Shown piece after piece: positions 621 to 64,000 of a DNA stretch of 64,000 nt. Origin of the DNA: Phallusia mammillata. Lineage: Eukaryota. How positions within the stretch are numbered: the first letter of the stretch is position 1; each line of letters starts with the position of its first letter. Location: assembly GCA_965637545.1 (NCBI GenBank), contig OZ281500.1:4216001-4280000 (forward strand), given 5' to 3'. Below the pieces are notes generated by a model, which searched no databases, was not told the origin of the DNA, and saw only the letters and a list, made by a program, of their open reading frames with translations. Position numbers and translations under genes: made by a program.

Positions 621-1109
621 CGTTAGTCCAAAAATATACATTGGGTGATGGTGTTTTTAGTTTTTATGCAACTTGTTTACAGAAAATTAAGTTGCCTGGT
701 AAACCTACCAGTATTTTGTCAAGCTGAATAACAAAATCTATGTTTTTCTTGATAATAGTAGTCAAAATGTTCTCAATTGCTTGTTGTTTGGGTTCTTTTG
801 CAATCATTAACTTGTCTCACACATTATATGCCTCCAAAATATTTGCAATAATTATGTTATACAGGTTTGAACCTGTAAGTCTCTCAGTTTTATGTAGGCT
901 AGATCTTATGGAGTACTTTGTAAAGGCAAAGGAAAAATGCTCTTTGCAGATTAGAGAAAGGCAAGTTTTGTTGTTTTGCTTTGTTTACTTTATTGTTGGT
1001 AAACGTATAGTTAAATAATACTGGTAAAACATTGTATTACGTTTGGGTCAATATGCCGGCGGCTGCTTACAACTGAAAATTATTTTGTGTGTGTAAGCCT
1101 ACCTCAATT

Positions 1110-26272: not shown

Positions 26273-26887
26273 ATGTCGAACCCAGCACCAGCTACTCAAC
26301 CTGCTCAAGCACCAGCAGCAGCAGCACCTACAGTCAAGCAGGGCAGAGGAATTGTTAAGCAGGTAAGACTATTTCTGTACATATTTGTCACAAAGAGTTT
26401 TAATTGGTCCCATCCAAAGTTTCACCCAGTTTCACTCATTTTTTTGTGAGCTTCAGTCACAAAACGCTTCATAATATGGGTTTAGTCATGACCACCAATT
26501 GTATTGTATTAATTTTGAAACCGTGCATGAAAATGGTACATAGGAATATGAAAACACTACACTAGCGCCACGGAATCGGGAAACAGCTGCAAAAACCTCG
26601 CGGTTGAAAATACGCCAATGTCAAAAATTTTACAAAAAAGGACATAATATTGTCAGACGCAGCAGCCGCACCCTTAAAAAGACTACGTTATAAACCAGGG
26701 GTGGCCAACCTTCTACATACCATTCGCCAACTTTTTAACATACTGTGTTGGATGCGCCATAAATGTCTCGTAACCCCACCTTCTATGACTACTTCTTGTA
26801 TATAGAGAGAAAGAGAAAGAAACAACTTTTGCATGAGAAGGATAGTAATAAGAAATAAGAACTATTAAGTAAAAAATAATTTTGATA

Positions 26888-26923
<36 letters not shown>

Positions 26924-29900: not shown

Positions 29901-32900
29901 GACGACAAGGAATTTACCGGGAAAGTAATTCAGATCGTGAACGCCGACGCTATCGCGATTAAAACAGCATCTGGTGAAGTAAAAACTATTCATTTGTCCA
30001 GCGTTCGACCTCCAAGGTAATTACGATGTTTTGGCCTTTTAGTTTTATAATCTGTAAGACAACTGTTCGCATTTAATTTTTTGAGTGATAAGCATTCAAA
30101 AAGCATTCAGCCTGATTTCCGTAAACTTCAAAAACACATCCGTATATAGTAGAGGATTTTTTAACTTATCTACAATGGCAAACTGCGCAGCCGAATCTTA
30201 AAAATGCTTCTACAATGTAAAAGCATTAATCCATCCAACAGAACTACTGTTTGTTGAAGGTAACAGGCTAAAAATCCATGACTCAGTTATTTTATAGATG
30301 CCACTACTGGGCATAAACTACAGAGGAAACTGGCTCACCATGGCCGCACTGATGAGTCCTTATAGGTCAAATAGGTGGTCTATTTGAACCGCTTTTAAAC
30401 TCATTTTTTCACCACATTTAAGGTATGACGACGTAACGTTTAAGATGGACAAGGACTCCGCCCCGGAACAAGGAAAAGGCAAAGGGCGCCCTCTATACGA
30501 TGTCCCATACATGTTCGAGGCTCGGGAGTTTTTGCGAAAGAAACTTATTGGCAAGAAGGTTAGTTTGAATAAATCGACAGTCATTCTCACCTATTATATT
30601 TTTAAAGTGATATGGTATCACGATATTTTCCCGTAATATTCTGATATTTTATCGTGATATTATTTGTCATGATGTTTTCCTCTGATATTTCTTCACAATG
30701 TTTCACCACGATTTTTTTCGATTTTTTACTATGATATATTTTCGTGAAACGTGGAATTCTTTCACAGGTGAATGTGAGTCTTGATTACATGAAACCGTCA
30801 AGTGCTGCGACTGAAACTTTGGCAGCTTTTCCCGAAAGAACTTGTGCAACGGTCCGTAGTGCTGGAATGTAAGTTTTATTTATCACTCTTCAGCATTTAA
30901 AGAAAATAACTCTAAATATACTATGCAGCTAAAACATTTTGTTTGTAATTGTGATTTACCTCAAAAAATTACCATTATGTCCAGTGCGTCAGGAACACTA
31001 AAAAAATCATAAAAATGAGCTTAAATATGAACGTAAATCAGAAAATAATTGAGATGAACATAAATTCATAACTCAGCCCTGAAGCGTCTATGCACACCAG
31101 CGATCACGGCACACTCCTATATAAATCACAGTGAATGCTCGGTGAGCGGCTGATTCGGTATGGTACCTTTAATGGGCCTGGCGTACTGTGATCTGTCAGA
31201 AAATAGGTACAGTTTATGACAAATATCTGGAAACAACATTACATTTAATAGTGTAAGTTTTCAATAATGCAACAGAAAATATATTAAATTATCAATAGTA
31301 TATCAAAAAAAAAAATTTGTAAGCATTTTGCTGTGTTGCTTGTTTTGCATTAAAATTTGCATATTTGCTTTTAGAAACATCGCCGAAGCGTTGGTGAGCA
31401 AGGGTCTCGTCAAAGTTGTACGTCACAGACAAGATGATGACCAGCGTTCTGCGCATTACGACGATCTACTTGCTGCAGAACAGAGGTAAGTTGAACAGCT
31501 AGCTATATCTGATTATGCCAGCTTTGCTATCCTAATAGTACCTGGCACAAGTGGGTCATGCTTGGCACTGTATTGCGCTTTTAATGCTTATGCCCTCCGC
31601 CGAAAATTCAATATGATGCTGAACGCAAGATCATTTTTTAGCATTATATGGTTGCAAGTAAAAAGTCTTAGTCTTAGGCCTCCTAAGCTAAGCCACTATA
31701 AACACATTTTTTAAAACTGCCTCGTTTTATGTTTTTCACGAGGTCAAAATCAATTTTTCAGATTTAAACAAAGGTAAATGCGCTTGCTGATTTATTGTTA
31801 CCACTTACTGAAACGTTTCATATCTCAACCATTACCTCAAAATTTTTGGTGCTGGGTCAAACATCTACAGCATTTTCCCATTTCTTTTATTTAATATATA
31901 TTTTTGTGGGAATAAACTGGAGACAAAGTTGCCCTACTCGTTGTCCTCAAAGTTCCATGCACAAGTTTATCAGAACTTAAACACTTCTGTTTGATATAGA
32001 GCTATTAAAACCGGCAAGGGCGTGAACAGTAAGAAGGAACCTCCCATCCACCGCGTTGCTGACGTATCTGGTGACGTCACCAAATCGAAGCAGTTTCTCC
32101 CCTTTTTGCAAAGAGCCGGAAAGTGAGTTCAGTATTCATAATAAATTTAGTTGATTGTTTAACAGATGGTTTGTAAGTTAGCAAAATCACAATATCAAAT
32201 AAGCAACGTGATCACCTTTGTTTCGAATTATTTTCTAATTATAAAAAAGAAAAAAGAAGAAATAAATTGTAAACACTAAAATTTGGGAATTACTTTTTGC
32301 CTCTAAGTTATTGTAAGGTAAAAAAAAACTTATAAAAATAAAAAAACTTAACGATAAAAAAACTTATTTTTGATCTAATTTCTAAACATTAGCTAATATT
32401 ATTTAGAACCTTTAGAATTTAAGTATTTTAAGCCCTTCGTTGTTTCACGGGTTGCTTTTACTTTCGTTTGGTCAAAAATAAATTCAAACCGAACGAAAAT
32501 CCAATCTCAATGTAACAGGTCGGAAGCAGTGGTGGAATACGTCTTCGGTGGATCACGACTCAAGCTCTACATTCCAAGAGAAACTTGTCTCATCACCTTC
32601 CTATTGGCAGGTTGGTTTGTCACGTGATCTGTTTGTCCATTTCAATCTATCGGATAAGTGGTTATCAAAATTGGGTGCTCGAATCGGATCTAGGGTTGCG
32701 TGAAAAATTATTTTTTTTTTAGTTTTTTAACTAATGCTCTGCTCACAACTCCAATTTGCCCATTTTTTTTGTGGTTAACCTAGATGTGCGATTACCGGGA
32801 TTTTCGTTAGATTTTCGTTGAGTTTTTGTGGCAAAAAACAGAATTAGCGATAAACCGCAACCGTCTGGTACTTACAATGTAAAAGATATCAACAGCGCAA

Positions 32901-35900
32901 CACTGTGGTATCTATTGCACTTACAGCATGCAATGAAAATTTCTCGTATACGTCCCTTTTTAGTATTGATGTTTCTCTCCACAGCTCATAGAGCTACTGA
33001 TGTTAAAACGCATCAAAATGAGCCATATGTTTTTTTTTACAATCTTTTCGATATAAACCATATTGAAGTGTTATTTTAAGCAGGTTTTGGGCAATTGCTA
33101 AACCAGTGTGACTAAAAAAGTAGAAAGTTTGTCTACTTATTTTACGTAACCGGGTTATTTATTCCCTTTAGGCATCGATTGTCCGCGCAGAGCAAGGAAC
33201 GGAGCTCAAGGTTTGATGGAGGGCGATCCTTTTGCTGAGGAAGCGCTGCTATTGACCAAGGAGTATTGTATGCACAGAGAGGTAGGATTGGCATTATAAA
33301 ATCGCTGCAATAGAACCTGAAATTTTGATAAGGCTGTTTGTAGTAAATGTTTCGACGTAGAGGTTTAAAAAGCAGCAATGTTTTATACTGACTGCTGATT
33401 CGTTTTGTTATTCTAGGTATTTCGTTTCGTGGTTACAACCCTAAACAATGTAGTTTTTGATATTCGGCTTGTATCTTTCCTTTAGGAATATTTAAGATGT
33501 TGAATTGTGTATCGTAAGTTACCTTCAAAACTATAAGTCAAGAGCAGTTGTGGTTGGTCATAATGAAACTATATAAACCTGGACTCAAAAATCGCGGATC
33601 TCGTTGGTTTTATTTGTTCGTGACAAAGGCGAAAAAAACAAAATAACAACTACTAGCAATTATATTTTCGTGCGGAACACAAGCATTTATGACATACACG
33701 CACGAAAATGTATCTTCAGCAACACAATATTTCATTGCCTAAAGTGTTTCTTTGCTTTCCAAAAACCTCAATCCTTCTATCTTCCGCACCATCCCGTGTA
33801 TAACGTCATATTCGTCACAAGCGTCATTGTGACGTCATATTTCGGTCTCCTTGTGGTTCAGTAGTCCTTCGAGGCTTCGCATGCGAATCGGTATCTTCCT
33901 TTTTGGCGGATCAACCAATCTGACACTCCTGCGTCGTTGCGTGGCAACACCTGTAGTTTGAAGTTGTTACTAGGTGGCGCTATGTGCAAAATATCACTTT
34001 TTATACCTGTGCTAAAATCCACATCACCTACACCCGCAATGTCTCCATCAACACTTGGGTAGCTCATGAAAGACGACTTCTTCAAGTTGTCACACGACCT
34101 ATGGTGAACCCGACACATGGTAACGTCTTGTTGATTGTTGCTGTGGTTACCGTTGCCAGGCCTCTGTTCGATATAGCTGCGCCGTTGCATGGCAACCTGC
34201 TGGCATGACGACGCGATGTTGCTAAGCAATTGCTTAGGAACCGGGGATACCCCTGAACCGCGACCGGGCAGAGTCTGCACCCCATAGTTGTCGACAGGTG
34301 GCGCTCTCGGCCGATTGTTTCTCGTCGTTTGAAACTTTAGCTCCTCTGGAGGTGGCGGGAGGACTTGCACTGGGTTTTCCGATATTGGGGCGAAAACCGG
34401 TTTTGCTGCGTACGACAACGACGGTTTCCACGACAACGGAACGCTGATGTCAGTGCTCGGGGTCCTTGCTGGCGTTGTATTAGCGGATGTTGAACTAAAA
34501 GACATTTCATTTTAAGTTAAAAACACATGCTGTATATTGCTTGGCTTTATCGTAAAGTTTACATCACTACTTGCGTGTGTGATGCACATATATCACTTAC
34601 CAAGTTATGTTCGCTGCATTAAGTGCGGAATTTTGCAACAGCGTGTCCAGTCGTTTCTGTGCGTTCCGGTCCAGTACGTTTGCATCAATCCGTGTGTCAC
34701 GTGGTAAGCTTTGGTCTGAATCTGCATCAAGTGACCAACAATGCGTTAAATTTCAAAAAAGAGTTAACAAAACAAGTTGTTCTTTACATTTTACAATATA
34801 GCTTCTGTGTCTTAAGGAAGAGTTTGGTATATAAAGGTATTCTGTGTTTTATGAAATGACAAAATTAAGAGTCCGTTATTTAACAAATTTGTCGTTCAAC
34901 TGGTGTAATGCTAAACAAAATACTAGTTGTTTCAAGAACTTGTATTTTTGGTGACGTTTCGCCCACCAAAACGGTAGGGCTTCTTCAGAGCAATGAATGT
35001 TTTTTTGCGAGCACACAAGCGCAGCGGAATTTAAAAGTCCTTCACAAGAAAGCGTGGTGAATGTGTTCATGATGTCCGTTTGCTATATTCATTTTACTTA
35101 CCTACTGACTTGTGTCTCCTGCTTCCTCGGTTTTGGTTGTAGTTTCTGTGACGTAACTTGTAGAAAATGATGAGTAACGCTGCTGCTAAGAGTGTAATGC
35201 CCACAAAACAACCCACTATGATCTTCGTGGTTTCCATTACCTTAAAAAAGTGAAAATAACTTTTGTGACCTTTATAGCTTAAATGGGAACCTACTGCAGA
35301 TTGGCAACAAAATTTAATAGTAAGGGCGCGTGGTTTTGATAACACTGAATAATTTATCATTGAGGTTATTATTAACGGGGTCACAATTAGTGGGACAACT
35401 GGTCGTTGTGAGGTGTTTTTTTCACAAATAATGTCTTTTCACTGAAGCCTTTTTCCTCCACCAAAAAGAAAACATTTACCAACTATATTGGTTGTTTTAA
35501 AAAAACCAACCTGGTCCGCTGTATCTTGGGAACTGGTTATGACTGGTTGTTTGAAAATTGGTACAATCGACTTGGTCTCTTCATTTATGCTGGTTGTCTT
35601 TGTAGTAGTGGTTTGTGTTCGGGATGGTGTGAAATAAGCCGGTCTTGGAGTGTATGTAAACTACAAATTTACAAAGCGTAAGTTTTTTGGCATTGTTTTA
35701 TCAAATGATAGTACTGTTAGATTTCCTTTAATTTTACACTTGTTTATCACATTATTCGACATTTTTAATTTTGAAAAAGTAAAATTTGAAATTATTTGCC
35801 TTTCGCTCACCCATTTATTGGTATTTGTTGCTACTGTTGGAGGTGGGTTTTGGTTCCTCGATTTTATGACCGTGGTCTCGGTGGTTAGCACTGACGTAAA

Positions 35901-38900
35901 CATTCTGACGTCATTAGATTGCGTCACATTAAGAAAAATAGTTGTCTCTGCAACGTCAGTACCGTTCCGCGTCACTGCACATCGGTAAATCCCCGTATCT
36001 TTCATTGTGACGTAAGTAAAGTTAAGGGATCCTGAAATAAAATGAAATTATGAGTAACGGTATTTCTTATAGAATCCATAACCAACCCATCAGTTGGTAA
36101 ATGTAATGAACTGCATCATTTTTTAATGCCTAATGCTACCAACGTTTTATTAATAGCTGTTGTGGTTATGACTACAAAGTCACAATTCATTACGTTCTAT
36201 CATATAACACGTCTAAAACAATCACGTCACAGCCAATCAAAGCAAACACCTTTGCCGCCAAACATTGCTCACGCGATTGCCATGACAACGATCGGTTTTG
36301 GATCAATAAATAATTATCTGCGTATTTGCCCACAAATTTGCATCACCGTGAGCAAATGGGGCAGCATGGCAATGGCTTAAAATCTCGCAATCAATAAACA
36401 CTTGGCGTGACGCAAGATCGATTGACGTCATTTGTTGTGGTTTTGGGGAAAAACAAACGTGACAAAGCGTTCGTACAGTGCAACTTTATTTTCGTATCCG
36501 GCATTTCGTATTTGAATCTAGAGATATGCTGTTTTGAAAATTATGTTGCAAATTAATGTTAATAACAAGAAAGAGACATGCCAATATATTTGTAAAAAAC
36601 GTAACCTTTCGACATTCTTTATGTCGTTCTTGTCAGTATCTTTAAAACCGTGAATTGTGTATCTAGTGTCAATGGCATTGATTTCCGACAAGTGTTATTT
36701 AAATTTAAATAGATAACAAAAAAAAAACGGTTGGTAGAAGTAAACTGAGGGACTAAAGTTACTTTTGGGAGTAAAAAAATCCGTTATCTCACCATTTCCA
36801 AGCGGTTTAATTCGCACTTCAAACCTCCCATGTCTGATTGGACTTCCGTCTGGTCTGTACCATTTCACTTGTACTTGCTTCGCTTTGCGTTTGACCGACG
36901 GCGCAGTGGGACATGGAATCTTCACTGAATCGCCCACTGAAACGTTCATACTTGCTGCTGAAGCTGTGAACAAAAATCAACACTTTGGGTTCTTACTGAT
37001 TCAAATTTATCAGAAAATTGTGATTGAAAGTGTCTCAGCCATCATATTAAAGTTACAAATACATAAAAAATTTATGAACGTTTTTTATGTATTCCTTAAC
37101 ATGAAAAGTGCGAAAATATTGGTTACTGGTGTGCAGTAAGATTAAAATATTCAGCTTTTGAATTAGGTTGCGTTTAAAATGCAAAATACATAGTCTTAAT
37201 TGTTAAAAAAACACAGCTTGTCTTCGGATAGAGGGACGCCCAGTGCAAAACAAAATTTGAACAATATTCTGAAACAAAATTGATTGCTTCTTTATCTTTT
37301 TCGCGTGGCACAACATCAGAAAACTCTTGATCAATATGTGGTGCGATTTTCCACCCCTTCATCTTCAGGCGCCAAAGGAAAACACTTCAATCATAGTGAC
37401 AGTACAAACACGGTCGACCACAGCGCCTGATCTTGTCCATCGATTCGCGATCAGCTCTAATGCAATTCTCGCGTTGCCTACGTTTTCTGGCAACAACGCT
37501 TACTCTCACACCGTTTGACCACTTACCGGCGTTAACGATGCGCGCGGCGCATGGCGGGTTTTGAACCCGTGTGAAGTTAACCAGAGGCATACGCCTGTAC
37601 ATCAGTGGGTATTTGCATCGCCCGCAACCCTCCCCTGAGCAAATGTTGCTTGCTTCAAGATATCTGTTGAGATAAAAACACTGTTAAATTTATGAACACC
37701 ATACACGGTTTTTGATCACATAACCTCCTTCCTTGTTTGTTTCTGTATTACAAAACCACCGAAAATTCAATGCCTTTCTCACATTTAGATAATAAACTGA
37801 AAATTAAAAAACACAAGAAAAACCTGAAACACGAACTCAAATGTAAGTCTTTGGATTGTCTATTTGTAGGCAGATTTTTTGCTTTTCATAAATATTTCTG
37901 TAAAATTTGGTGTTAGTGAGCTAGAAAAAAGCAGTCCTGGTGGCCCCCAAAAAACACTAGCGCGATCTAGGCCAATCATCATCGATTTTCACATAAACGT
38001 CATTGATCTTGCAATACATTTGTTTATCGATCGGTGTACCTTCTCAAATATTTTCCAGACAAACGTATAGAATGCATGGTTGTCTGCTTGTATAACACCA
38101 TCAATACCTTGCAAATTGAAGTAGGTCGCAGTTGCAAAACCATGGGTTTCCCTCAAATTGCATTCTTCTGCTGTTCGGTAGCAAATCAGGATAAATCGTT
38201 GTCAAGTTGTTTGATGCAAGGCTGAGGCTCTATAAAACGAACAAAGAATGCCCGTCCATCATTAATGCAACCATTAACTCTTACACACACACACACCCAA
38301 AAAACTTTTACATACACCCCTCTTACATGTATTTTTGAAACAAAAACTATTCAAACCTTAAAAAAATAAAATCGATTATTGTCATATAGTGTCTGTCGAA
38401 GCAAGATATTGGTCTTTATAGACACTATTTTTGTTAGTGTTCTGTGTAGCACCGTATTGAAAACACCGTTTGAAACTATCAGGGGGTAATTAAAGTTTGA
38501 CCATAAACCAATGTAAATACTGTAGCTGTGACTGTTCCAAAAATCATTTTGAAGAGCATGTTTGCAATTGGTTGGGGTATTCTTAATAGACGGCATTGTT
38601 TAGAACTTGTGTAGGACCGTAAGCATCTCTTGGATAGCCTTTACAAGTGGTGGATACTGTTACACACGCCAGGTGTAATTTCGTACTTCACGCGTAAATT
38701 ATTCAAGGTTTAATGGAAATTTGGGCTTTGTTCCAACTTTTGTGGTGGATCCGAAGGTGGCATACCGAACTTAAAGAATTGATAAAGAACACAGATAAAG
38801 AATTAAAGCATCATCTTTGCAAAATGCGAGTTCGGATATGGCCCGTTTGTGTTTAACTGGAGGCAACTGCTCAGGCCCATATAGCGTTTACTGAAGTATT

Positions 38901-41900
38901 TAATAGTTCATGAATAATAAATGCAAATCCAAGGAAGGTTTTTGTTTTGCTATGATATGATCAATTATAGTGGACTGTAATAAAAATAACAATATTTTCT
39001 CTTTCTTGACTCTACGCCTTTAACAAAGTCTGACTGATAACTTTTTTTGAATTTACTTGATATTTTTGTTTATGTTTGCCACCAACCATTTATTCTATGG
39101 AAGCTGTTTATAGTTTAGTTCAGCCTGTTTGAAAAATAAAACATATAGTGGTTATATACAAGTGGTCATACATGTATACTAGTCATACATATAAAATAGC
39201 CGTTCCCCACTTTGTCGCCATCGCCAAAAGTTTTTTAAAAGTTGCTCTGCATCGCCATTTTTTCAATGCAAATTACAACGCTCTTGTTGGTTTAATCATC
39301 CGACCATTACAATCGTAATCTCATAGAATCAATACGTGACAAATGTTTTAACCGAAATACTGGCTTGTATACTTATGAATGATGGAAACGTTTCGAAATC
39401 CTGATTGATTTACTTCACTTCTGAAACTTGTCTTGAAAAAATTAACTTGGAATCTTAACAAATCTTTTAAGATATCGGGACGTAACTATTGGTCCTTCAA
39501 AGACCAGGTATCCATCTTAATTTCAAATTAGCATCTCTGTTATTGGCCTAAATGCCAGTACATTTGACCGTTGCGTGGCGTCATTGTCCAGAATTGTTTG
39601 TCAATAGTATAAAACTTACATCAAGTGACGTAAGATCACTGAAAGCTTTTTCCTCGATGGTTCTGACGTCACAATAAGCGAGCGAGAGTTGAACGAGTCG
39701 TTCCATTCCGGTAAACGAACCGGCTCGCACCCGCTGTATCTTGTTCGACGAAAGATCGAGAACTTGTAAATTCACTAGCGACCTCATTGAAGGGATTTCC
39801 CGCAACTGACACGAATTCATTCGCAGTTTCTAGAAAGAAGTTTTCAAAAGATACACCGTTGGTACTTAACAGATGAAATGGACAAAGTTTGACCAAAAAT
39901 ATAAAAACATCAAGCCAATAAATGATAATTAAGCCGCTGACTGTGCACGCTTTTTCTATTCTAAAATGTTTCATCAGTGCAGCTGGTGTCAAGACTTAGG
40001 TGCATTGACTAGTGTAACCACATTATGACACACCAAGCACTTTTTTTAAATTGATGAAGTATGTATGACATTTTATCCTGAAGTGTCGTTTACTGTCAAG
40101 TCATGTCGTCACCTGCACTGATGAGACAAAGTAGGTGAAAATAGTGTGAACAGTCTGCAGTTCAGCCGAAAACTCAATTCCCCAATAAACCAACGCAAAG
40201 TATTGTAAGTGTTGATGTTTTTTTAATTGGGGTTTGTAAGATTTACTTTGTTGGTTTCTCCCTTTTCGGAAACAAGTATCCGGTCCGGTAAAACCATAAT
40301 GTAAAAAGACGTTTTACAAATCTTTGGCATGAATACCTTAAATAAAATGCAGGGACCCTAATACGTTTCTACAATTTTGCACTGTTTATTTTCAAACTTC
40401 CTCTACAGGCTTTTGCACTCAAACTTTGGCTTACTTCGTTGTGTGGTTAAGGGCGGATGGAAACTTTTATGCAGGGGATTAAATCCCATGACAAACAAAA
40501 CCAATAATATAGGCTCTGTTAAATAAAACAAAAATAGATGTCTTTACTTACCCTGCTACGCAACAAAAGCAATCCTAAAATTTAACATCAATCTTTTTAT
40601 GTAGGTGCAAAAGTTTGCGAAAAGAATTTGTTTTCTTTGTCATAACCAATTCATCAAAATTACTAGATATTCTTTCAGAGTTACGCGCAATAAACAACCG
40701 GAGTATTGTTTTTGCCCTCTTAAAACAAAATGTGGATCGCCTAAGGTGTTTTTATCCATTAACCAAACATTTTTTTTAGTAACAAGCACTTTTTCCTATC
40801 TTATATCCTTGCATTTAATGCTACATTGGAATAGAATTGCCACAGCTTAATTACGCATTCAGGAAATGGGACGTCCTCGGCAAAGAGGCAATTATCCCTT
40901 TGTGGCGATTTCTTCAATTGCTGCGTTGCACAAGCGGTGCAGTAGTGGGATAGCGGTCGATAAACGTGCACTAGCTATTCATGAAACATTGTGGTAAATC
41001 GATCCCAATTAAAGGCTTCAATCGCGCGGATCGACAACCATGGGTTGTGATTTTAACAGTTTTATTTGTCTTTAGAGTTTAATTTTTTGCCAAGTCTATT
41101 TCAATGATAGAGAACCTATGTTGCAAGTATATAGTGCATGTAAGCATGCAGTACATTAACGGGCATATTTTTTTAGGCTAAAACTAACAAAACTCTTGTT
41201 TCTATAAATTATTTTCTAATTTTTTACTATTAAATGTGATGACGAGAATCTTTTAGTCACCAATAAGATCAAAATGAGCCTCTAGCACACCTTAATCTCA
41301 TAGTGATGCCAAAAAATATGTAATATCTCAAAAACTGATATTTTATTGTACACTTAACATTCGTGGAATTACTGAGTTTGCACGGTTTTATGTTTTTTTT
41401 TGCAACAACGCCCAATGTAAGAAACACCTATGGGGCCTAAATAATATATAGAACTGTCTGCTAACTTGTGTGTAGTCAAACCTCATTTGTCGGTTGTGTA
41501 GACAACATTTTGTTAATTGGTTCTCATCCAAGCAATAATTGCAACGTCGGTTTATCTGCATAGTATGAGATTTGGTTCAGGCTTTTCAACCTCACCGTTT
41601 ACCTTTTTACAGTTTTACATAAAAAGGTTTGTCATGTCTGTGGGCGGAATGTTGGATGGATATAACTGGTTGATTCTGTTTGGTCTAGGGTTTTGTTTGA
41701 TGTGAAAAAAGCAATTATTAGCTTGCTACTGCAGGAGTTGATTTTACACTTTGTGGTAATGTGTAAGATAACCTTCGTACCGTCTGTTGAATTTTACCGT
41801 ACGCCCAGGTTAAGAAGCGCTCGTTTGGCCTTTAGTTTGTTTAATCGGTTGAAAAAAACGAACGTTCAATTGTGTTCTTCAAGCAACGTAACTGAGACAA

Positions 41901-44900
41901 AGTTTGTTAAATAACTTTTACAACATTTTTCACATACCTCTAGTTTTTGCAAGCCGCTGAACGCTTGGTTCGAAACATAAGTTAATTCCCTTAGTTCCCC
42001 GATGTCTAAAGTTCTTAACGTTCTTCGCCCTTCAATGAAGTCGTACGCAAGTAGTTGTGTGATCGGGTTGTTGCGAAGCGACAGATATTCGAGATTTCCA
42101 AGCCTTGCCAAAGCCACACGCGGCACTCCAGTGATTCTGTTGCCAGATAAATCCAATCTTCGTAGCTTTTTCAAGTCCGAAAACGAGCTGCTCTGTAAAG
42201 TTGTATAGTTTGATATAGTGAATTGTTGTAAGGTTCGGTTGTATGGGCTGCCATTTTGTGACAATACCCATACACTGCAAGTCGTGGTTTCAAAGGTTTC
42301 ATTAGGCGTTATGTTTTGTACGACAAAATATGCCAAGTCCATTAAAATATGGCTACCTCATAAATTTGTTCTGTAAATGGACTGTTTTGCTGCAACGACT
42401 TTTAGTACTCGCCAATTTTTGAACCAAAATTTTAACATGATTATTCTGGCCTGTATTGTACTAACAATCAACATGCTTGATTTATTATACGTTTTGGTTT
42501 AGTCACATCAATCTTGACACTAACGAACATATCCGTATGTGATGTTCATAAACCACTATTATTTGAAGAATTTAACAATACCACCCTACAAGACCACTTG
42601 TGCTTGTTACACACAGCTAAAAATTGATTAGTAACAAGACATGTCCAATCCGATTTACAAACTTTCATCGATCTTCTCAAACAACACGATTGATTGGAAT
42701 TAATTATTTTCGTGTTTTACGAATTAACCCTGAAGACCTCCTAATCCCTCGATCTTTAGATCTTTTTTCACAACATGTCGTGAGGTCGCCACTATGTCCC
42801 TATAGGTCTTGTTTTTCGGTCAAAGGGTTAAGTTTAATTTGAAGCTTTGTTTTTTTTGTGTGTGTGATTAGATTTGGGGCTTTCAATCCAGACAGTTTAA
42901 ATAATAGCCGGTTTTCATCGGGTCCAAGTGACTTATTTTACTAAATAAACAACGAATTGCATATTTTGGCACATTGCACGTACGATTTCTGTGACTTGTT
43001 TTAAGTCACGTACATATTTATTTGAACCACCGAGGGGAAAGCTATCATTTCCTTTTGTTAATCCCATTCAGTCAAGAAACATAATCAATGTTACAAACAT
43101 TAGAATCTTATTCTCTGTATCATAATCACATACTCTCGCATACAAAAAAAAAACACAAACAATAGTTCTCGCTTACGGGGACTTCCACGATGACGTTGTT
43201 GCTCAAGTCGAGCGTGACGAGGTTGGGAATTTGCTTGAAGACATTTCGTCGCAATTCACGAATGTTGTTATTTCCTAATGTAAGTCGCTGTGTAGATGTT
43301 GGAAACAGCGGCGGTAATGTCCGAAGTCCATATCCCTCACAATTTACCTGTGAAGGCAAACAACAATAATATTGTGGTATAATTATTGGTATTTGACTGT
43401 AGATTTAAATGCAGAAAACGGTTATTTGTGGTATTCTGTGATAAACCTTTTTAGGCTCTTTTTTGTTGAGGTGGCTTTTCTATTCTCTTGCGTGTTTAAA
43501 TACACCATTAACTAAGCAAGCGTTTTTGAACGTTATATGGATGCTTCGTAACCATTTACAGATTAAACAGTAACAAGCTGAAATAATATGGCATGTTTTA
43601 GGATGCTCACAGCCTTATCTTTCACAGACTAATGTTTTAGTCCATGTACTCAAGGTAAAGAAAGCACGTTCAGTCAGTTTGAAACCTAGCGATGATGATT
43701 AAATCAGCAATTATTTAAACTAATAAACGTCTAAACAAAGTATACTTTTTTCACCATTCAAATGTTTATTTTAGTTTGCTAAGCAAAATATGAACAACTT
43801 AATGTGGGCTTTAAAACATGCGGATTGTTAGCTTGTTATAAGGTTAATACGACTGGACGTGTTGAACAAACGGAGGTTTTAATTAACGCTGTTTTGTCCA
43901 ACCGTGTTCGATAATCTGATCGATTTTATTTTAATTCTTTAACCAATGGTACTATGTCAGACATGTTGCCGGAATATATGTACAAAACAAAATCCCCAAT
44001 TCCAAGTGAAAAAATTAATTTGTTTTAACTCCTGGCTGACTTTAGTTTAATTTAGAGCTTGCGTTTTGCACGCATGGAAAAAATATTCTCGCAACATTAT
44101 TAAGATGCGCAATATTCCAGTAATGCATATTTTTATTGCCAAATTCCGCTTCATGAACGCTGTCGTTATGCCGCAGACGTTGGGTGTGCCACAGGGTTCT
44201 TCTTTATTACCCTTACGCTGAAGACGGAGGTAATTGCAGCATTACGACAACGCCAGTTTCCAATTGGCTCACATCAATAATTCACTTGCTCGATTTAACG
44301 TTCTTGCAAAAGTTCCCCTGCGTGACTCAGGTGGGCTTCTGCACCCGCAAATTGAAACTTGTCAAACATTAGTCCCTTTAATGTTCCCGCATACCTGCTT
44401 CGAGGCGTCTGCGGCGGAGGCCAAGTTGAGGCCATCTCGCTAAAACCGTTGGGTCTCTTTATGCGTTGACGCGCATCGTAAAGTATATGCATTGGATATC
44501 GTTTATTTTTGAATTGTTTAAACTACAAAGTCTTACCTAGGTACTACAAGACATAATATTGTTGTTCTTGTCGCTTTTGTACTTTGCGTTATCACGCAGT
44601 TTAGTTTCAAAGTAGTCACACCTATGCTTGATACGCGAGCCAACCAAAATCGCTTTATTTTAAGCAAACAAAGTTGCTTTTGAATAAACTATTCCTCACA
44701 GTGTTGAATGACAAAAGTACCTAGTTCCACAACCGTTAATTTTGTTCAGGTGGTAAAAAAAAACATTTTCAATAATAACTTGAAGAAATTATGATACCCT
44801 AGGCCTATTATAGGAATGGCTTTGATTCAAAGATAAGTGTTTCGTGGTCACTGGTCTGCATAGACTATAAACAAACTTGAAGAAATATTGACTTTGCAAT

Positions 44901-47900
44901 TCTGTTAAGTTGCAGCCATCTGGGTACTTCTCACTCTAGCCGAATCTTAGTAACATCCTTTAACATATTAAACAACACAGAAATATATCTTACCGTGTCA
45001 TCGTAACATTTGCAATCGGTCGGGCACTTGATTGACTGTGCTTCCACTTGTACACAATTATCCAAATAGAAACACCAATACGTTGCCATGGATACTATCA
45101 GTAGGCGTCGGAATCTGTTAAGCCCTCTCTTTTCTGCTCGGTCTCGATTTTGAACTGGTGCATGTTCTCTCGTCTTCGATCGCCAAGCTTTTTTCTTCGA
45201 GGCGGCCATGTTCTCTCGAGCGTAAAAGGCACGTGATTTTGTCGTGTGCTCTGATTGGCTGTTGCGTCCGTTTGTTGAAATGGTTGCAATGTTCAAAAAA
45301 TTGACGGAAGCAAATTATTTCATGTTTCGAAAAAGATGACTTTGACGTGGCGTTCGTTCTGTGGATGATTTATACTTGCCACTAGATGTTATGTCAGTCT
45401 TTTTGACATAGATTAGTTTTTTTGCGTTTTTTTACAGTGGGTATTAAACTTCTTTTGATAACCTTAAAGCATCTGCAGAAATACAAAATAATGTTCCAAA
45501 AGTACACCTTAGGTTTGTGCATAATGAAACTGAATGCCTCAAATTACCACTAAAATGCACTTCATTGTAAAAACTCTGTCCACTAAGAAATTTACAACGC
45601 CGTTAGTCGTCGCAAGGGAGCGCGTATTTTTACATCCTCCTCCAGACGCACGCATGGATTTATTTAACAATGTATTATTCATGACGTGAAGCGTTAGGAA
45701 AGCTCTGCCAATTGCCACCGTCGCATGCTTAAGCCATGACGTCAATTTTGTTTACCTACCCTAGATGGTAGTAGAACTAAACAAAACAGTTACAACAGCG
45801 TTCAATGTTAATGTAAACTCTTGTTTATTTGATATTATCAATGGTTACCAAGCTGTAAATACACAAAGCAGATGGTAAAATAACAATTTTCGGTTTCTGA
45901 TTTTTGTCATTGCACGCCTATTAATGTCTTACTTAAAAGTTTATTAAAAGAGATATTTCACGTTTTCAAGGAGTTGTAATGGTAATAAGTCCCGTTCTTA
46001 CAAAAAGGTAAAAAAATCACCCGTTTATATGCTGTATATACCTACAATCGCTATGACACATCGAATTTTTCGGGCAATTGAAACTAAATTCAGCGCATTT
46101 TTTCTGATAAGGAGATCTAACCTTAATCTCCATGTATCTCATCAATGATCTCGCGTTTAATTTCTACGAACCAACGCTATGTATATTCCGAGATCGGCGT
46201 TTGGAGAGTTAAGTGGCGCGCAAAGACTGGAAGATATCAATTATTTATCTCGATCAATGCACCACAATAAACAAGCTACCTCCAGGCACCATTTGCGCGC
46301 AGTGGTGACGAACTACGCTATTCCATTTCGCAGTGGGATTCCAAGGAAAGAGCAATTATGCGACTGGACAAACATTATAATCCCGTTATAATGCCCTGTG
46401 GTCGATTTTTTGAACTCTGTGTTCGCACATGGTATAATACCTTTGATTACGATTTTACTTTGAAAACTGAAAAAAATAGTTTTATTTCCGTTTGGTGAAT
46501 TTCCAAATTAGTTTCTAAAGCATTTTGTTGAGTCTAAAACGTTTCATATACGACTATCAGTGTAAGATTTATAAGGAATGTAATGGTTCAACTTAATTTA
46601 AACATAGAGATTTAATTTATTTTACAACGTTTCGTCAAGTGCTCATGCTGTCAACAATAATGCAATTCGATCAGTTGCACCCATTTAGATCAAGTTAAAA
46701 AAGTTATTGTGCTGTAAAGGCGCTAATGCAAACAGATAGCAGTTTTAATCTAAATTTCCCATTTCTACACCTCAAATTTCAAACTTGCTATTGCACAACG
46801 GTATAAATTACGTCACCAGGTTACGTCACCGTAGCGAAAACAAAACAGATGAATATTTCTCTGTTTCCTGTTGCGCGGTTGTTTACATCCGGGACTGGGT
46901 AAATAATTTAGACTCAGTTTCCCCATAAGCCTCTACAATCATTCTTGCCGTAAAAGCGTCTTCCATCGACCAACACAAATGCCAACCAGTGCCATTCTGC
47001 AACCAATCTACATCTTAAACACTTATCATGACTCATCAAATAGTCCAGGGACTCGTTTTTGTCTTTTACATTTTTTAGAACGCTTTATCGGGGCTAGTCA
47101 GTGCCAAAAGTAGATATAAAGCAGATAAATGTTGTTTGCCTTTATGTATATTTCATTTCTAAGGCACAATCGACAATGGACATTGTATGTACATTACAGT
47201 ACAAAAACTTAAAATTCATTACCAACATTTTAAATTGTCATGAATTGCAACTCACATAATGAAAGTTTTATGTGTATAATCCAAAACGTTTAATCGTCTG
47301 TTAGCTAATAGCGATTATATGGTAGCCTATTAACATAACCATACCACACGCCTTTTCTTTTCAAACTTGGACAATTTCAAGTTTTCAACTAATTATTCTT
47401 TTTAAATAGTCTCAAATCAATCTGTTCTTTACTACATATCAGAACACAAGCATTGCTTTATATCAAATTTTACGCGCATGTACAGCTTACGTTATAGATT
47501 CATCTTTCTTTGTCTACCATGGCATACTCTTCTCTGCCATTCAACTTTCCCATATCTTTATTGGTTAGCCAAAGATATTGATCGCCTTTGCAAAGCCCCT
47601 CTGGATTTCAGACGGCTGAAAAATAACTCAACTCCTCTCTGCTTGCTCTGCATATTATGCTTGAAGACATACATTTCTAAGTTAAACAACGTTAGAACTA
47701 TGTTTATGTTGCTGCTCGCAACAATGAACGCATTTGTTGCAATGGATAAAGATTATGCTAGACTATCTGAAGACTTAAGTGCAAAAAGTTGCATTGTATT
47801 GTGTTGTACACGCGCATATTTCTAGCCATTCAAACAAGCCATTTACTCTGTGTATTTTCAGACTTTTAGTCTTGCAGTATTAGAAATCTGTAGCCATCAC

Positions 47901-50900
47901 AGGGCAGAATGTTTCAAAATTTCAATTTTAAATTACCGTTTCTCTACCCAACCAGGCCAAACAGTTGGCGATTTTTTGTACCAAAACTACCCTACAAAAG
48001 TCTTGCACTCTCAGCAAATAATGTGCACTGCTAAAACAAAACCTTACTGAATTACTAATCGCATCACTAGTTAATTTACTAAAGGCCGCATCACTAGTTA
48101 ATAAAAAACAAATATAGCCACCGGTGCGTATGTTTACTTGCGCATGTATAAGATAAAAATATTGTATCCCCCTGCGCTAATTTTAAACCAGTTTCAAAAT
48201 CTGTATACCTGACCAAAACTACTTTATCGATGTAATTTCTGCAATACATGTATTATGTTACACGTCTGCGCATTCACATAAATAACAGCCATGGCCGTAA
48301 ATGTGTAGACCTGTTCTAGGTGCAACGTGATTGCAACTGTACGGTTAACTTTCTGTTGCTGTTCAAACCAATAAGATTTACTTGAAAAAACACCTTTTTC
48401 TGTCACAAAAGAGTTAATTTAGTGGCATACAAAAACAATGCACAAAAGTCAAAAAAAAAACTTTCCTGATGTGCAGCCTACCTTTAAACCAACCACCTAA
48501 TACCTGTGGTGGCGACCCTCACACTTTATGACCCGAGCAAGCACTCAAGGCCGAAAAAAAAACACTTGTCTTGTAAATCTCGGCTCGTCTTCGATTAATC
48601 AATTCCTAAACGTGGCCATGATCGTCAACCGTAGTCCGCCGCAAAACGAAATCCTTCTACTCGATGTGGTAACCATGGCCTCACTCGAGTAGATCTTTTC
48701 CTTGTAAGAAGCACTGTCGCTGTGATTTCCATAGGGAAATGGTGTGACCGGGCCCGCCAAAAAAATCGTTAAACCCCTACTGGCCTTTGGCAGATGATTT
48801 GGCAAGGTTGTGATGCGCTTTTGTGTTCACTTGCTCCTCGCTGTCTGCAAGTGCAACGAACACTCACTGTGTGTTGATTGACTCGGAGCGCGAAGTCAAA
48901 AATCTCCGATCAGTACAAATGTTATCTGGTGCAACGCAATGGATTTAAGATTGATATTTAACCCAAAATCCCACGACGGCCTATGTAAGAAAAGGTCAGC
49001 AATGACCTATATATGTTAGGTCCCTACGGTGAATCCAAAAACATAATAAAGGTTAATTTAAATTTGTTGGTTTATTTTGGTATTTAAAAACGCTGTAATA
49101 GATCTCCACCAAACAGTTTTTTGTCCCAAAACAAATTATTGCTCCACGAAAACACGTTAATCACTACATTCTTTCTAGTAGTATATGTGTCAAGTATCTT
49201 TGTCTTTATAAAATAATTTTAAAGGGTGCATTTTATACTCAAAAAGTGCCAAAACTTGTTGCCTGTGCATTATTCAATTTTCCTCAGAAGCAATATTTAG
49301 TATTTGTTTTGCTTGTTACGAAATTTTAAGTGAAGCATTTTGTACAGTGATAAGTTCCAGACCTACAAATTGTGTTTATCTAAAAGTGTAGATCATTCTT
49401 TTTCCGTCCAAGTGTCTGTTGACTAAATGAAACCACTTAGTATAACCATTGACAAATTACCCTTCGCTGTTATCGCCTTTTACCGCGCGCAAAAGTTGGT
49501 GTTAAACTAAGAAAAGCTGTTAGACCAGACGTTATAATTGACTTCGAAATGTAATGAAACTAAATACTCTTTTCGAGTTTCTATCTTTTGCATATTTGTA
49601 TTCACACTTGTCATTGACTTTAATGTTAGGTTTACTTCGTTTAAAAGCGTACAATCAGACCTTCTTTAGCAGTGCAAACTGATAACTAACGCAAAACGGT
49701 AATAGTTATTGGTCTACTTCAAATGTAAGACGCTGTGAATAGTTTTGCTTAAGTGATATTTACAAAGATCATGGGAAATTTTGGTCGATGCTTTTACTAA
49801 GAACAGATGAGAAGTTACGTCCGAACTGAAACAATTTGTTCAGCTCTTTGCCATTCTAGTTATCTCTATCAGCTTCTCCTGTGCTAACTGGGTCTTGCTT
49901 TTCAATCAACCACCTCTAAAAGCCTGCACCAAATGGCTTACTCCCAACTCTACCATGCGTGGTTAAAAAAACAACACAAAAAGTAGAGATTCAGACTTAA
50001 TTTCAACTAAATTGGAAGGGTAGCGACCCAATTGACTCCCCTATCGATTAGGTTGTAGCCTTGTCGAAGGGACACAAGTATTCAAATCCTATTAGAGGGT
50101 TTAGTCCAGATTTACTGTCTAAATAGCAAGAGTGATGTCTCACCAATGCCTTGTACTATCTACTTTCCCTTTCGTTACACATGTTAAACATCATGAAAAT
50201 TCAATTTAGAATCAATAACATCAAAACTTACCCAAAAGTAATCCTGTAACTTGTTTGGCAAGCGCACGCGCACAAAGTAAAAATCTAAACCCATGCACAA
50301 CTACCCCCCCCTCAATCGTTCTGACGTCACGCTTTGGGTGGGGGGGGGGGAGGTCGAAGTAGTTTGGCGAACCATTAACTTTCAGTAATGCTGTGACGTT
50401 GATTCGCTGTGACTGTTAAATAATTAAGAGACTTGGCAAAAATCTTGCGCTGGCTTTTTAGGTGCCTTAAAAACACCGCAAACGCGATCAGTTGTTATCT
50501 TACCATATAAAGGTCTGATCCAAATGTTAATTCCAAGAAAAAAACACTACATACATCAGTCACGTATCGCAAAGTAGGGTTACGTGTCTTTTTATGATAC
50601 GTTGCATTCGTGCGCTAACTTTGCATTGAATATATTTGTTCATTATGTACTTTAAATCAACAAGCTTAAACTAAGTGCAAATTAGAATTATAAATGAACT
50701 TATTCCTTAAGTGCACTACCATAAAAACCACATACGTTATTGTCTATCTTCTAAATTTCCATTCCCTAGATGTACTAATTTTCTACTTATTACCAACATT
50801 TATAACCGTAACACACTTAAACTGCAAGGTTCTGACTTAAATCGTAAGACAAAAGCAAAACAAAACCTGACAACATACTCGACTCCGTTTCGCACCGGTA

Positions 50901-53900
50901 GTTGTACGTCTCTGACTCACTTCAACGTTTCGCGGGGGTTGGGCTACGTTAAGCCTGTTGTCAGCGTATCGACCAAACAGAGTTTAAATAAACTTAATTT
51001 CGCGCCAATTCGATTGGCATTGAGCGGTTTTGGGGACCCTTGCGGACAAATAAATTGTGCGAGCAAAACTTTGGTTTTATTAAAAGCTGAACGCTGCTAT
51101 TGCCGAAAAAACAAGCTTCCAAAAATCCTAAACGGAGCAAGAACGACGCAAAATTGAAAGCACGGGAGTCAATGCGTTACAGTGTTTGGTACGGTTTTGT
51201 TTTATAGTTATTGCCTTTACACATCGTGCAATTGTCAAATTGTTGTGTATATTTTAATAAAACGATTCTCAAAAGTAACTTAAGAGTGAAAACTACAGAG
51301 TAAACGCTATGAGAATAAATAAACTATTTTTTTAAATTGACATAGCTTAAAACGCAATCAAGTGATTTGAAAAAAGTTACATTCACGTTGCATCAACACT
51401 ACATAAGTACGCCTTTCTCGCATTTCGCAACAACACAAAATTGTCTACAATATTTCTCAGCAATGGCACATTCCTATTTCAAAACACTCTGCCAAACCTA
51501 GCACTCAAACACCACTATTGGCCCTGTGAGAACGTCGAAATATCAATAAACGTCGAGTTGTTTCATCTCTTCATGGTACAAAGCGCCTTGCGGGATCATC
51601 CACAACAAATCAATCGATCGCCATTTTCCGATTGCAATCAACAAACCACTAAATAGTTACCAACGCACAAAATACCCACATATCATAAAATGACGTTTCG
51701 TGATGTCATAGCACCTAATTTTTTGCGAGTGCCTTATCTTTATTTTGCGCGACGCTTTATATCTATTGAATGTTGTGGCGCAAAGTTTCGTTGCACCTCA
51801 TTTCCACTGTATACATTATGCATGAAAACATGGTAAAATCCAATTCAGGAGTGTGGCGGAATTTTCGGTCTCCGTGGTCTCACAACCGCCTCACGACATT
51901 AAAAAACATTTTGTATTTCAACGTGTTTCCTTGTTTTACGTTTACAAGAATTTCGCGAATGGTTTTAATAGGAAATATATTAAATTTGACCAAGGAAGGT
52001 TGAGAACCACTGGTTGTTTGGAGGCGCTTGCTTATTTAGTTCGATAGGGTTGCCTATAAATTTTCGCCTTTACTACTTAGTCGACGAATAAAAAAAAAAC
52101 ACTCCATCCCTGTTAGTTGTTAACTTATGCAGTAAAAATAAAGATATGACAGTTTTGAATTTGCATTTTCACCTTTTTTGCTTACGCGATGTTAGGGTGT
52201 ATAATTTCTGGATAAAGCTACGCTGGCTTCTCTTATAAAATGCACACTTTACTCTTTGATCAATTTGCTACAAGTTAACTTCATAAAGGACCAATTTAAA
52301 CTGGAATTTACCAGTGACCCAATATAAATGAATTTCTAATTTTTTCACACAATGTTTTGACAATTTCCTGGTGATCACTATATTGACATTTATCCTTCCC
52401 TACGTTTTTCGTAGCGTTAAACTGAAAACACTATTAAAACAGCAAATGCTCTTTAAACGAATTGTCTCATGGGTATTTACATGTCAAAAATGGCCACAAA
52501 TCCTTCACAGTCTTAAATCCCATTGAAGACAAATCACTGAAGTAAATCCGGTTACATAATCATTACGCGCTGCGACGTAATTGTCGTGTGACGTCACATC
52601 ACCGGTCGATGTTAATTGCGAAATGGTCTGTTTGACGACAAATGCAGGTACAAAAAACGTGGATGATGCCGTTAATGCCACAGGAGTCGGCAGCCTTTTT
52701 TGGTCTGCGGACCGATTTTGAAACTGAAATTTTGTCGCGGACCGGCCCAAAAAATAACTGCAAATATTTAGCAATGAAAACTGTAAATCTTTAAATTAGT
52801 AAATTAGTTTATCGTCCCCGGCATACATTGGCAAAATATGTTGTTTGAAAATTGCACTGCCTGGTAACGAACTCCTCGCGGACCGGCGGTTGCCGACCAC
52901 TGCCGTTACAGACTTGCATTTAACAGTGTACATGACTTATTACAATGCGAGCAAAAAAAAAAAAAAACGAGACAAACGACATCTCTACAAAAAATTATTT
53001 TCTACTAGCAGAAATAAAATATGTAAAAGGGTATCATTAATTTTTAGTTTTTGTACGGTGTGCGTTTATTTGCCGGTTGTAGTGTTTTAATGTTAACTAT
53101 TATCGAACCGTGTAGCACAATTCGTTTGAGGACCTTGGCTTGGATAAAACCATCAAACCAAAAAGGTTACTTAGCCTACTAAAACATTTAACTGTGCACA
53201 TTGCAATTAGAACCATCAATCTTCAAAGTGTTTGAGTGAAAGTTTATGCTGTGAATATTCGCAACCATCTTATCACTGGTGTTTACCTTTTAGGTGATGG
53301 TTGAAGTTGAAACGATTGACCGGGCCGGCAACTTTATTGGTTGGCTGTTCGTCGACGGAGTCAATATGTCCCAAATGTTGTTGGAGAACGGATTATCACG
53401 TCTTCACTTCACAGCTGAACGCAGCAGCTACTACAAGTCTTTACTTACAGCCGAACAAACTGCCAAGGAAAAGGGCTTAAACGTAAGATATGTAATGTTA
53501 TGTTAAGTGTTTAGTAGTCTTGTGGGCCTCTTCCACGTGTAAGGTTCTTCTTTACTCTCTATCTTTCGTTTTATTTCTCTTTTAAAGTATGTTGTAAAAA
53601 GTATTCCATTTGTAAAGCATAAGTTGAAAGCGTGTGCCAATCTTTCTGTGGTGATGAATCCTTGTTATAATTTCTTCGAGGCTACGTACTAGTGATGGGA
53701 CGGGTACCCGGTACTCGGTACTCGGTATCGATGGTATCGAACGATTTCAGTGGTATCGATACTCGTACTCGGTATCGAAATATTTTGTCTCAGTTTTCGA
53801 TACCAACGTGCGAGTACCGAAGGCCGATTTACACTATAAGAACACTGAAAACTTTGTGCCAATATATGCTTCGGACAGCACAAATTTGGGAAAAAGTTCC

Positions 53901-63400: not shown

Positions 63401-63795
63401 CTTAGCCTTTAAAATAATATGTTATGATGTTTTTTCCTAATACATTGTTTGGGGTCTTTGGTGTGTACTTTTTTTCTAAACTTAAGTGTGTGTGGACAGA
63501 TTGACCGGTGTCTGTTCAATGAGATTGAGAAATGGCACAGAGAGCTTCACAATTCCCCGGAGAAATCCACGCCAGATGGGAGATGTAATTGCTCAAGGGG
63601 CATTGAGGACACTGATGGAAAGACACTGTCTGATTGCCTTGCTATCACCCAATCTTCATTCATGGGTCGTGTGTACCAAGAAGATATCGCCCTGTGCTTG
63701 ATGTTCCAAAATGACTCACTGTCGCAAAATGTCTCCAAATGCATTCATAACAACTCCCTATCAGTGGAGCTAATTTCGAATCCAGTTGTGCTACA
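60441..63795 (+). CDS. RAB3IP: Rab3A-interacting protein / Rabin8 (Sec2-domain Rab GEF), 5' part; the gene continues beyond the window
   Basis: Exons 60441-60584, 60870-61043, 61417-61534, 62905-63056, 63500-63795 (donor gtaag at 63796). Sec2 coiled coil [43 protein letters not shown]|[20 protein letters not shown], then RHKRNSS and [17 protein letters not shown]. Cannot separate RAB3IP from RAB3IL1; the start codon is inferred. Confidence 0.88.
61994..62460. repeat. Three tandem ~158-bp units in RAB3IP intron 3, possibly the core of a non-autonomous Helentron/DINE-like element
   Basis: Units start near 61994, 62153 and 62311 (CCCCRAAGTTTGTCYGACTCGTTTTT...GATTTGG.T.AAATTTACACAGA...). They are preceded by a 9-bp inverted repeat GTCCCCTTC/GAAGGGGAC (61916-61936) and a T-rich low-complexity stretch. 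Confidence 0.8.
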
Positions 63796-64000
63796 GTAAG
63801 TGATTATTTATTATAGTTGTTTAAATGCCTAACTGGGAGATGTTTTTAATGTCGTCATGCCTGCAAGTAAACAGTTGATATTTTGGTAGCTAAGGTTGTT
63901 TGGAAAGGGCACTGGTCTCTAGTGTGTTTTTCTTTTTGTTGTAAATGGCAACATATGGTGGTACAGTTTTCTTTCAACATATTCATGGATTTCTCAATTC

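Follow-up and report, generated by a model that had tools for sequence, protein, structure and literature searches.

We examined a window of 64,000 nucleotides (nt), the whole stretch of DNA analyzed here, from the ascidian Phallusia mammillata (contig OZ281500.1, positions 4,216,001 to 4,280,000 of the forward strand). It holds the complete, presumably single, gene for SND1 (Tudor-SN), one intron of which spans 20,012 nt and harbors a second gene on the opposite strand, whose predicted product is a membrane protein with leucine-rich repeats (LRRs) and an immunoglobulin (Ig) domain. The sequence makes a good case that this nested gene encodes a protein of the NGL type, the family that comprises NGL-1 (LRRC4C), NGL-2 (LRRC4), and NGL-3 (LRRC4B), and the finding probably extends to a tunicate an arrangement known from vertebrate SND1 and LRRC4. 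Our literature search found no paper on the nesting of LRRC4 or NGL genes in tunicates.

The host gene, its long intron, and the nested gene

Four public runs of the same organism (X1, X5, X7, and X9) were aligned to positions 33100-39000 of the window. X7 looks like a DNA run, covering the region unspliced, and was used as a control. The contigs of these runs carry no strand or expression level, and strand was read from splice-site polarity. The features of the locus are as follows.

26273..58863, plus strand: SND1 (Tudor-SN) coding span from ATG to TAA, by Pfam SNase and TUDOR and 3BDL matches; the whole gene lies within the window
33172..33281, plus strand: SND1 exon equivalent to human exon 16, ending ..KEYCMHRE, matching 3BDL chain residues 240-275 and covered by RNA contigs
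33282..53293, plus strand: SND1 host intron, 20,012 nt, GT..AG, phase 0, by splice sites and spliced RNA in X1, X5, and X9
53294..53482, plus strand: SND1 exon equivalent to human exon 17, 63 codons, matching 3BDL from chain residue 276
44994..45209, minus strand: NGL-like exon 1, predicted, with the first in-frame ATG, a signal-like hydrophobic stretch, and the start of the LRRNT cap (CPTDCKC); donor GTAAGA
43177..43347, minus strand: exon 2, predicted from splice sites and phase 0, completing LRRNT and holding LRR1 and the beginning of LRR2; Pfam LRR_8
41938..42192, minus strand: exon 3, remaining LRR2 and LRR3-5 (LRNNPI.., LDIGEL..); Pfam LRR_8 at 6.5e-16, junctions predicted
39620..39829, minus strand: exon 4, LRR6 (22 residues, C-Q-L-R-E-I-P..) and LRR7-8; PDB matches to LRRC4C and LRRC4B, 3′ junction by an X5 loose end
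38108..38229, minus strand: exon 5, LRR9 and the start of the LRRCT cap (NPWFCNCD); joint 37663/38108 in X5 and X9
37527..37663, minus strand: exon 6, remaining LRRCT (..CGRC..); joints on both sides in X5 and X9
36793..36963, minus strand: exon 7, N-terminal half of the Ig domain; RNA joints, weak Pfam V-set and ig matches
35811..36031, minus strand: exon 8, C-terminal half of the Ig domain (DTGIYRC) and start of a Thr-rich stalk; RNA joints, weak match to 2DL9 (20.3 bits)
35511..35660, minus strand: exon 9, Thr/Pro-rich stalk, by RNA joints and translation
35102..35240, minus strand: exon 10, transmembrane segment (hydrophobic, about 21 residues) followed by basic residues, by RNA joints and translation
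34601..34721, minus strand: exon 11, cytoplasmic, invisible to the scan for open reading frames (ORFs) and placed solely by RNA joints 34494/34601 and 34721/35102
34007..34494, minus strand: exon 12, cytoplasmic tail, by RNA joints
33835..33950, minus strand: coding part of exon 13, ..KETEI and stop (an end of the class I PDZ-binding type); intron 33951-34006 in X5 and X9
33609..33614, minus strand: AATAAA poly(A) signal of the nested gene, read from the sequence, about 330 nt from the donor of SND1 exon 16
45210..53293, no strand assigned: about 8.1 kb from the nested ATG to SND1 exon 17, containing the 5′ untranslated region (UTR) and presumed promoter or regulatory DNA; no other gene found

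Pfam places SNase domains in two of the SND1 exons and a TUDOR domain in one (2e-16), in keeping with SND1, in which a Tudor domain is inserted in the last of several SNase repeats. Coding begins with the ATG at 26273 and ends with the stop codon at 58861-58863, and the exons flanking the long intron match the human SND1 structure 3BDL without gaps (1.7e-05 for the upstream exon, 1.8e-26 for the downstream one). RNA contigs enter the upstream flanking exon from the exon before it (33170/33172) and leave it at 33281. The host intron is removed by splicing, as contigs of X1, X5, and X9, from three studies, join 33281 to 53294 (loose ends at 33283), with the donor GAG/gtagga at 33281/33282 and the acceptor ttttag/GTGATG at 53293/53294. 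A 20,012-nt phase-0 SND1 intron had been claimed in an earlier note on this DNA, and splice sites and RNA contigs agree with it. The same note's range of 66 to about 960 nt for the other SND1 introns is roughly matched by the remaining coding segments, which lie at most about 1 kb apart, a figure for the spacing of segments rather than for boundaries derived intron by intron.

The nested gene runs on the minus strand in 13 coding exons, encodes 838 residues, and has GT..AG introns throughout. Nine of its 12 junctions are supported by RNA, eight as joints in spliced X5 and X9 contigs and one by a loose end, at 38229 in X5, that continues into the end of the next upstream exon (exon 4). Read on the plus strand, the eight joints show CT..AC, equivalent to GT..AG for a minus-strand gene, a polarity opposite to that of the SND1 introns. 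Exons 1 to 4 and the start codon are predicted, the exon 4/exon 5 junction being the one that RNA establishes in that part of the gene; four predicted junctions, which are canonical and phase-consistent and preserve the 24-residue LRR period, were combined with the RNA joints. The complete opposite-strand gene of LRR, Ig, and transmembrane type that the earlier note described is thus confirmed as a transcribed gene with spliced RNA.

From its N-terminus the protein comprises a signal-like stretch, LRRNT, nine LRRs, LRRCT, one Ig domain (spread over two exons), a Thr/Pro-rich stalk, a transmembrane segment, and a tail of about 260 residues, with the stop codon at 33835-33837. A 56-nt intron, 33951-34006, supported by RNA in two runs (X5 and X9), shifts the frame to give the protein end ..KETEI and rules out the end ..KDY obtained from ORFs only. 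Retention of this intron would abolish the PDZ-type motif.

The AATAAA signal and RNA ends of the nested gene at 33594 (X9) and 33537 (X1) put its 3′ end about 300 nt from the donor of SND1 exon 16. At the other end, the length of an X9 contig suggests a 5′ UTR of at least about 245 nt. No Rfam family, tRNA, tandem repeat, or other convincing gene or ORF was found in the host intron.

Two further observations concern the reads over the nested gene. Positions 34877-34930, within a 380-nt intron of this gene, are a very high-copy short repeat with a depth of about 71,000 in the DNA run against a baseline of about 85, at which many contigs branch or stop; it is probably an element resembling a miniature inverted-repeat transposable element (MITE) or a short interspersed element (SINE). 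Between 33537 and 39000, X1 contains unspliced contigs with many single-base differences and small indels, partly common to X7, which may come from another haplotype or from DNA or pre-mRNA in the library.

Relation of the nested protein to the NGL family

The nine LRRs of the spliced translation (24, 24, 24, 25, 25, 22, 24, 24, and 24 residues) lie between an LRRNT cap with the motif CPxxCxC..C and an LRRCT cap with NPWxCxC..C..C. The Phallusia protein shares with the NGLs the domain order LRRNT, nine LRRs, LRRCT, Ig, and transmembrane segment, together with two more particular traits: an atypically short sixth LRR of 22 residues (C-x-L-[RK]-[ED]-I-P, then L-x-x-L) and an E-T-x-I end. Its single Ig domain is followed by one hydrophobic segment and basic residues; NGLs have one C2-type Ig domain and then a transmembrane segment. 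It differs in being longer, at 838 residues against about 640-710 in vertebrate NGLs, with a long tail, and in ending -ETEI rather than -ETQI. The two ends belong to the same PDZ-motif class and differ by one residue; that of zebrafish Lrrc4ba is -ETQI (PMC6739339).

Comparison with solved structures points the same way. The 46 residues at the start of exon 4, spanning LRR6-7, gave their best single-domain PDB matches with LRRC4C (29.1 bits, chain residues 191-232) and LRRC4B (28.9 bits, chain residues 161-203), against 16 bits with the other domains of those chains and at most 11 bits for the best domains of the LGR4 and LGR5 chains whose alignments were shown. LINGO-1, AMIGO, and SALM/LRFN chains were not named among the 60 best PDB matches for this segment. 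The LRR exons are colinear with structures 3ZYJ, 3ZYI, and 3ZYN, and exon 3 with those of LRRC4C, LRRC4B, and LRRC4; a colinear exon match in one stretch was obtained with NGL structures only, plus LINGO-1 for exon 3. For the Ig domain the best single-domain match was the Ig domain of human LRRC4 (2DL9), weak at 20.3 bits, as were the Pfam V-set and ig matches to the two Ig exons; the LRRCT exon alone had no PDB match. A Ciona gene (KY.Chr14.1150 / KH.L155.18) is already named Lrrc4c in a Ciona supplement from its best human match; Snd1 and the adjacent gene numbers do not appear in that list.

A metagenome scan with exon 3 returned one contig, L001, carrying at 491-2191 (plus strand) a single-exon LRR protein of 566 residues. 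Its N-terminus looks Toll-6/7-like, and the contig, an invertebrate contaminant in a JGI metagenome, is unrelated to the nested gene.

Position of the host intron in human SND1 and in other animals

On the 3BDL chain, the last residue of the tunicate upstream exon falls on 275 and the first of the downstream exon on 276 (its residue 3 on 278). The crystallized SND1 fragment comprises residues 315-863 in an 885-residue numbering, behind a vector tag (PMC2441809). These 549 residues plus 21 tag residues make up the 570 of the 3BDL chain, and Cys535, Arg537, and Glu554 fall on chain C242, R244, and E261, so that the chain index + 293 gives the 885-residue numbering and 275/276 becomes 568/569. 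Adding the 25 residues (910 minus 885) that we take to lie N-terminal gives 593/594 of the 910-residue protein. Human SND1 exons 1-16 encode residues 1-593, corresponding to nucleotides 1-2006 of NM_014390.2 (PMC3382171), and the Phallusia host intron lies between the equivalents of human E593 and V594, at the exon 16/17 boundary (intron 16) and in identical phase. Exon 17 has 63 codons in the tunicate and in vertebrates alike, and vertebrate exon-sized fragments diverge from one another exactly before VEVEVE and after ..KKEK.

In vertebrates, LRRC4 is antisense within SND1 in human, mouse, and rat (PMC6297716; PMC9789969), as the earlier note had stated for human, and PMC3933685 gives coelacanth and/or zebrafish as further species with the pair.

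A protein search with SND1 exon 17 gave 24 exon-sized fragments, and look-up was limited to those differing from human. Three non-vertebrate SND1 genes (L124/125, on ENA contigs of 0.5-1.2 Mb from ERZ25071447; L127, from SRR20439968; and L128/129, from SRR23999937 and SRR23999949) have an intron at the identical position (..RE/gt..ag/V..) and in the same phase, and because of this shared position the SND1 intron at ..RE/V.., as read from these sequences, is old. Its coordinates in the three are:

L124:9610-9988
L127:about 28-580
L128:about 235-703

L127 probably comes from a tunicate, to judge by an exon 17 that shares 74-80% identity with those of Phallusia and the closest relative of Phallusia found, and by an exon 16 ending KEHCMHRE. 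That closest relative, L122, from a JGI metagenome (L122/123: JGI 3300001689 and 3300001463), shows 83-84% identity and has an intron of more than 7.17 kb upstream of exon 17. Within this intron, at L122:373-1932 (minus strand), lie ORFs resembling transposase remnants (e.g., ..RWDAHRMADYCW..) with no Pfam match, and part of the intron length may derive from a mobile element. The intron is also long in L126 (SRR25569784), where it is seen in part only, and in a non-human vertebrate (L130) intron 16 exceeds 6.7 kb and intron 17 exceeds 5.8 kb, without further exons. SND1 exon 17 had no match when scanned against contigs of prokaryote genomes.

Ancestry of the nested arrangement

The nested SND1/NGL pair is probably ancestral to tunicates and vertebrates, rather than an independent insertion, because Phallusia has the same host gene and orientation, an intron placed where human SND1 has intron 16, and a nested protein with NGL-type features. 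For a gene of this family to have entered this intron a second time, again antisense, would be very unlikely. Several observations nevertheless weigh against shared ancestry. The intron is small in the three non-vertebrate genes above, one of them probably from a tunicate, at about 380 nt (L124/125), about 553 nt (L127), and about 470 nt (L128/129), and has nothing nested in it; either the intron long predates the nesting, or there have been repeated losses of the nested gene. In L122 no NGL exon was found in the available part of the intron, which is uninformative because the matching 8.1 kb nearest exon 17 in Phallusia is likewise without NGL exons. Genes of the LRR superfamily are over-represented among nested genes (PMC3933685), which slightly raises the prior for convergence. 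On hg19, LRRC4 (127,667,124-127,671,002) lies between SND1-IT1 of intron 16 (127,637,562-127,640,130) and MIR593 of intron 17 (127,721,913) and is therefore bracketed to SND1 intron 16 or 17. We consider intron 16 the likely one, and our literature search found no statement on which SND1 intron holds it. Other points against concern the family assignment: exhaustive phmmer found no homologue of the cytoplasmic tail (217-residue frame), the comparison was with solved PDB structures and so leaves LRRN, LRRC24, ISLR, LRIT, and Kekkon outside it, and the assignment is built on architecture, motif, and structure matches rather than on a tree.

These points bear on two rival accounts of the locus. 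An NGL-like or other LRR-Ig gene could have entered the SND1 intron within the ascidian lineage, independently of vertebrates, as the empty introns, the frequency of nested LRR genes, and the bracketing of human LRRC4 would allow; we give this a small but real chance. It would require a random move within some 10^8 bases of genome to land on a stretch of about 0.5 kb and to arrive in the same host, antisense, and in the same intron if human LRRC4 is in intron 16, with a gene that has NGL-specific features, and the loss or relocation of genes is common enough in tunicates that an empty intron in a relative is easily explained. The other account takes the nested gene for a member of another LRR-Ig-transmembrane family (LINGO, LRRC24, LRRN, ISLR, or Kekkon-like), its resemblance to NGLs being generic and the shared host coincidental. 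Whole-sequence PDB rankings of single LRR exons are indeed led by TLR3 and LGR4/5, rankings that do not discriminate between families because the repeats of many-repeat proteins add up; an ESM Atlas search with exon 3 returned generic LRR clusters only, the Ig half matches LRRC4 weakly, and many LRR-Ig families have no solved structure. Against this stand the LRR6-7 scores, which single out LRRC4C and LRRC4B over their own other repeats and over LGR4 and LGR5, the absence of LINGO-1 from the 60 best matches for that segment, the colinearity of the exons with NGL structures, the E-T-x-I end of a protein that also has nine LRRs and a single Ig domain, and the name already given to the Ciona gene, and we regard a different family as having only a slim chance. 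That a 20-kb block was misplaced between two SND1 exons in assembly is hardly credible. X7 DNA contigs cover nearly all of the 5.9 kb examined (33100-39000), including the passage from exon 16 into the nested 3′ end (33165-34904), the window contains no N, and in the closest relative the intron at this place is also longer than 7 kb.

For the reading by shared ancestry, the claims of the earlier note fare unevenly. As to the use of one and the same intron by the two lineages, the tunicate intron corresponds in position to human intron 16, and LRRC4 itself is narrowed to intron 16 or 17. The suggestion that the pair survived the rearrangement of tunicate genomes under functional constraint is weakened by the empty intron of about 553 nt in a probable tunicate; any such constraint is not general and has no support outside Phallusia.

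We infer that the nested gene would be orthologous to the NGL genes as the pre-duplication counterpart of LRRC4, LRRC4B, and LRRC4C, and that its product would be a type I membrane adhesion receptor in which a glycosylated stalk joins nine capped LRRs and one Ig domain to the transmembrane segment, docked by its E-T-x-I tail to PDZ scaffolds of the PSD-95/Dlg type, as the motif predicts. Tunicates and vertebrates would both owe the nested arrangement to their common ancestor; in vertebrates LRRC4 would have stayed at the locus and shed its coding introns there, and some other lineages would have lost or relocated the nested gene. LRRC4B and LRRC4C, which the earlier note supposed to have left the locus, may rather be copies whose duplicated SND1 hosts were lost. 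On balance we lean toward this history as a whole, in which the nesting preceded the split, the NGL gene was then intron-rich with a PDZ-binding end, LRRC4 shed its coding introns in place and not as a retrocopy, and NGL receptors predate netrin-Gs.

In its host gene and in the opposite strand of the nested gene, the Phallusia pair is like that of vertebrates, and its host intron agrees exactly with human intron 16 in position and phase. It differs in scale, 20 kb against tens of kb for the mammalian host intron (the human locus is at 7q32.1), and in the structure of the nested gene, with 13 coding exons against the single coding exon of vertebrate LRRC4. The netrin-Gs are, to our knowledge, regarded as vertebrate-specific, which makes a partner of the LAR type, such as NGL-3 has, more likely as the ancestral ligand of an NGL-type receptor. 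A parallel is offered by the LRRTM/alpha-catenin pairs, long kept and lost in some lineages, in which an LRR synaptic adhesion gene likewise sits antisense within a large intron and the host gene is of the housekeeping type (PMC3933685). Ciona and amphioxus reportedly lack LRRTMs, whose nesting is thought to be early-vertebrate, so the SND1/NGL arrangement would be older.

The next gene downstream of SND1, at 60441-64000 on the plus strand and running past the end of the window, encodes a Rabin8/RAB3IP-like protein with a guanine nucleotide exchange factor (GEF) domain of the Sec2p type (Pfam 1.9e-13). Such a gene is presumably not a neighbor of SND1 in humans. Tunicate genomes are heavily rearranged and have little gene order in common with vertebrates, and a nested pair in the same intron would, if true, be a rare fixed point.

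If the arrangement is ancestral, it would date an NGL-type adhesion receptor with a scaffold-docking tail to before the vertebrates, and the intronless vertebrate LRRC4 genes would derive from an intron-rich ancestor without having left the locus. Interference or regulation between host and nested gene has been reported for mouse Snd1 and Lrrc4 (PMC9789969). The Phallusia locus, at 20 kb against tens of kb, offers a compact system for testing such effects, with the empty intron of other animals as natural controls.

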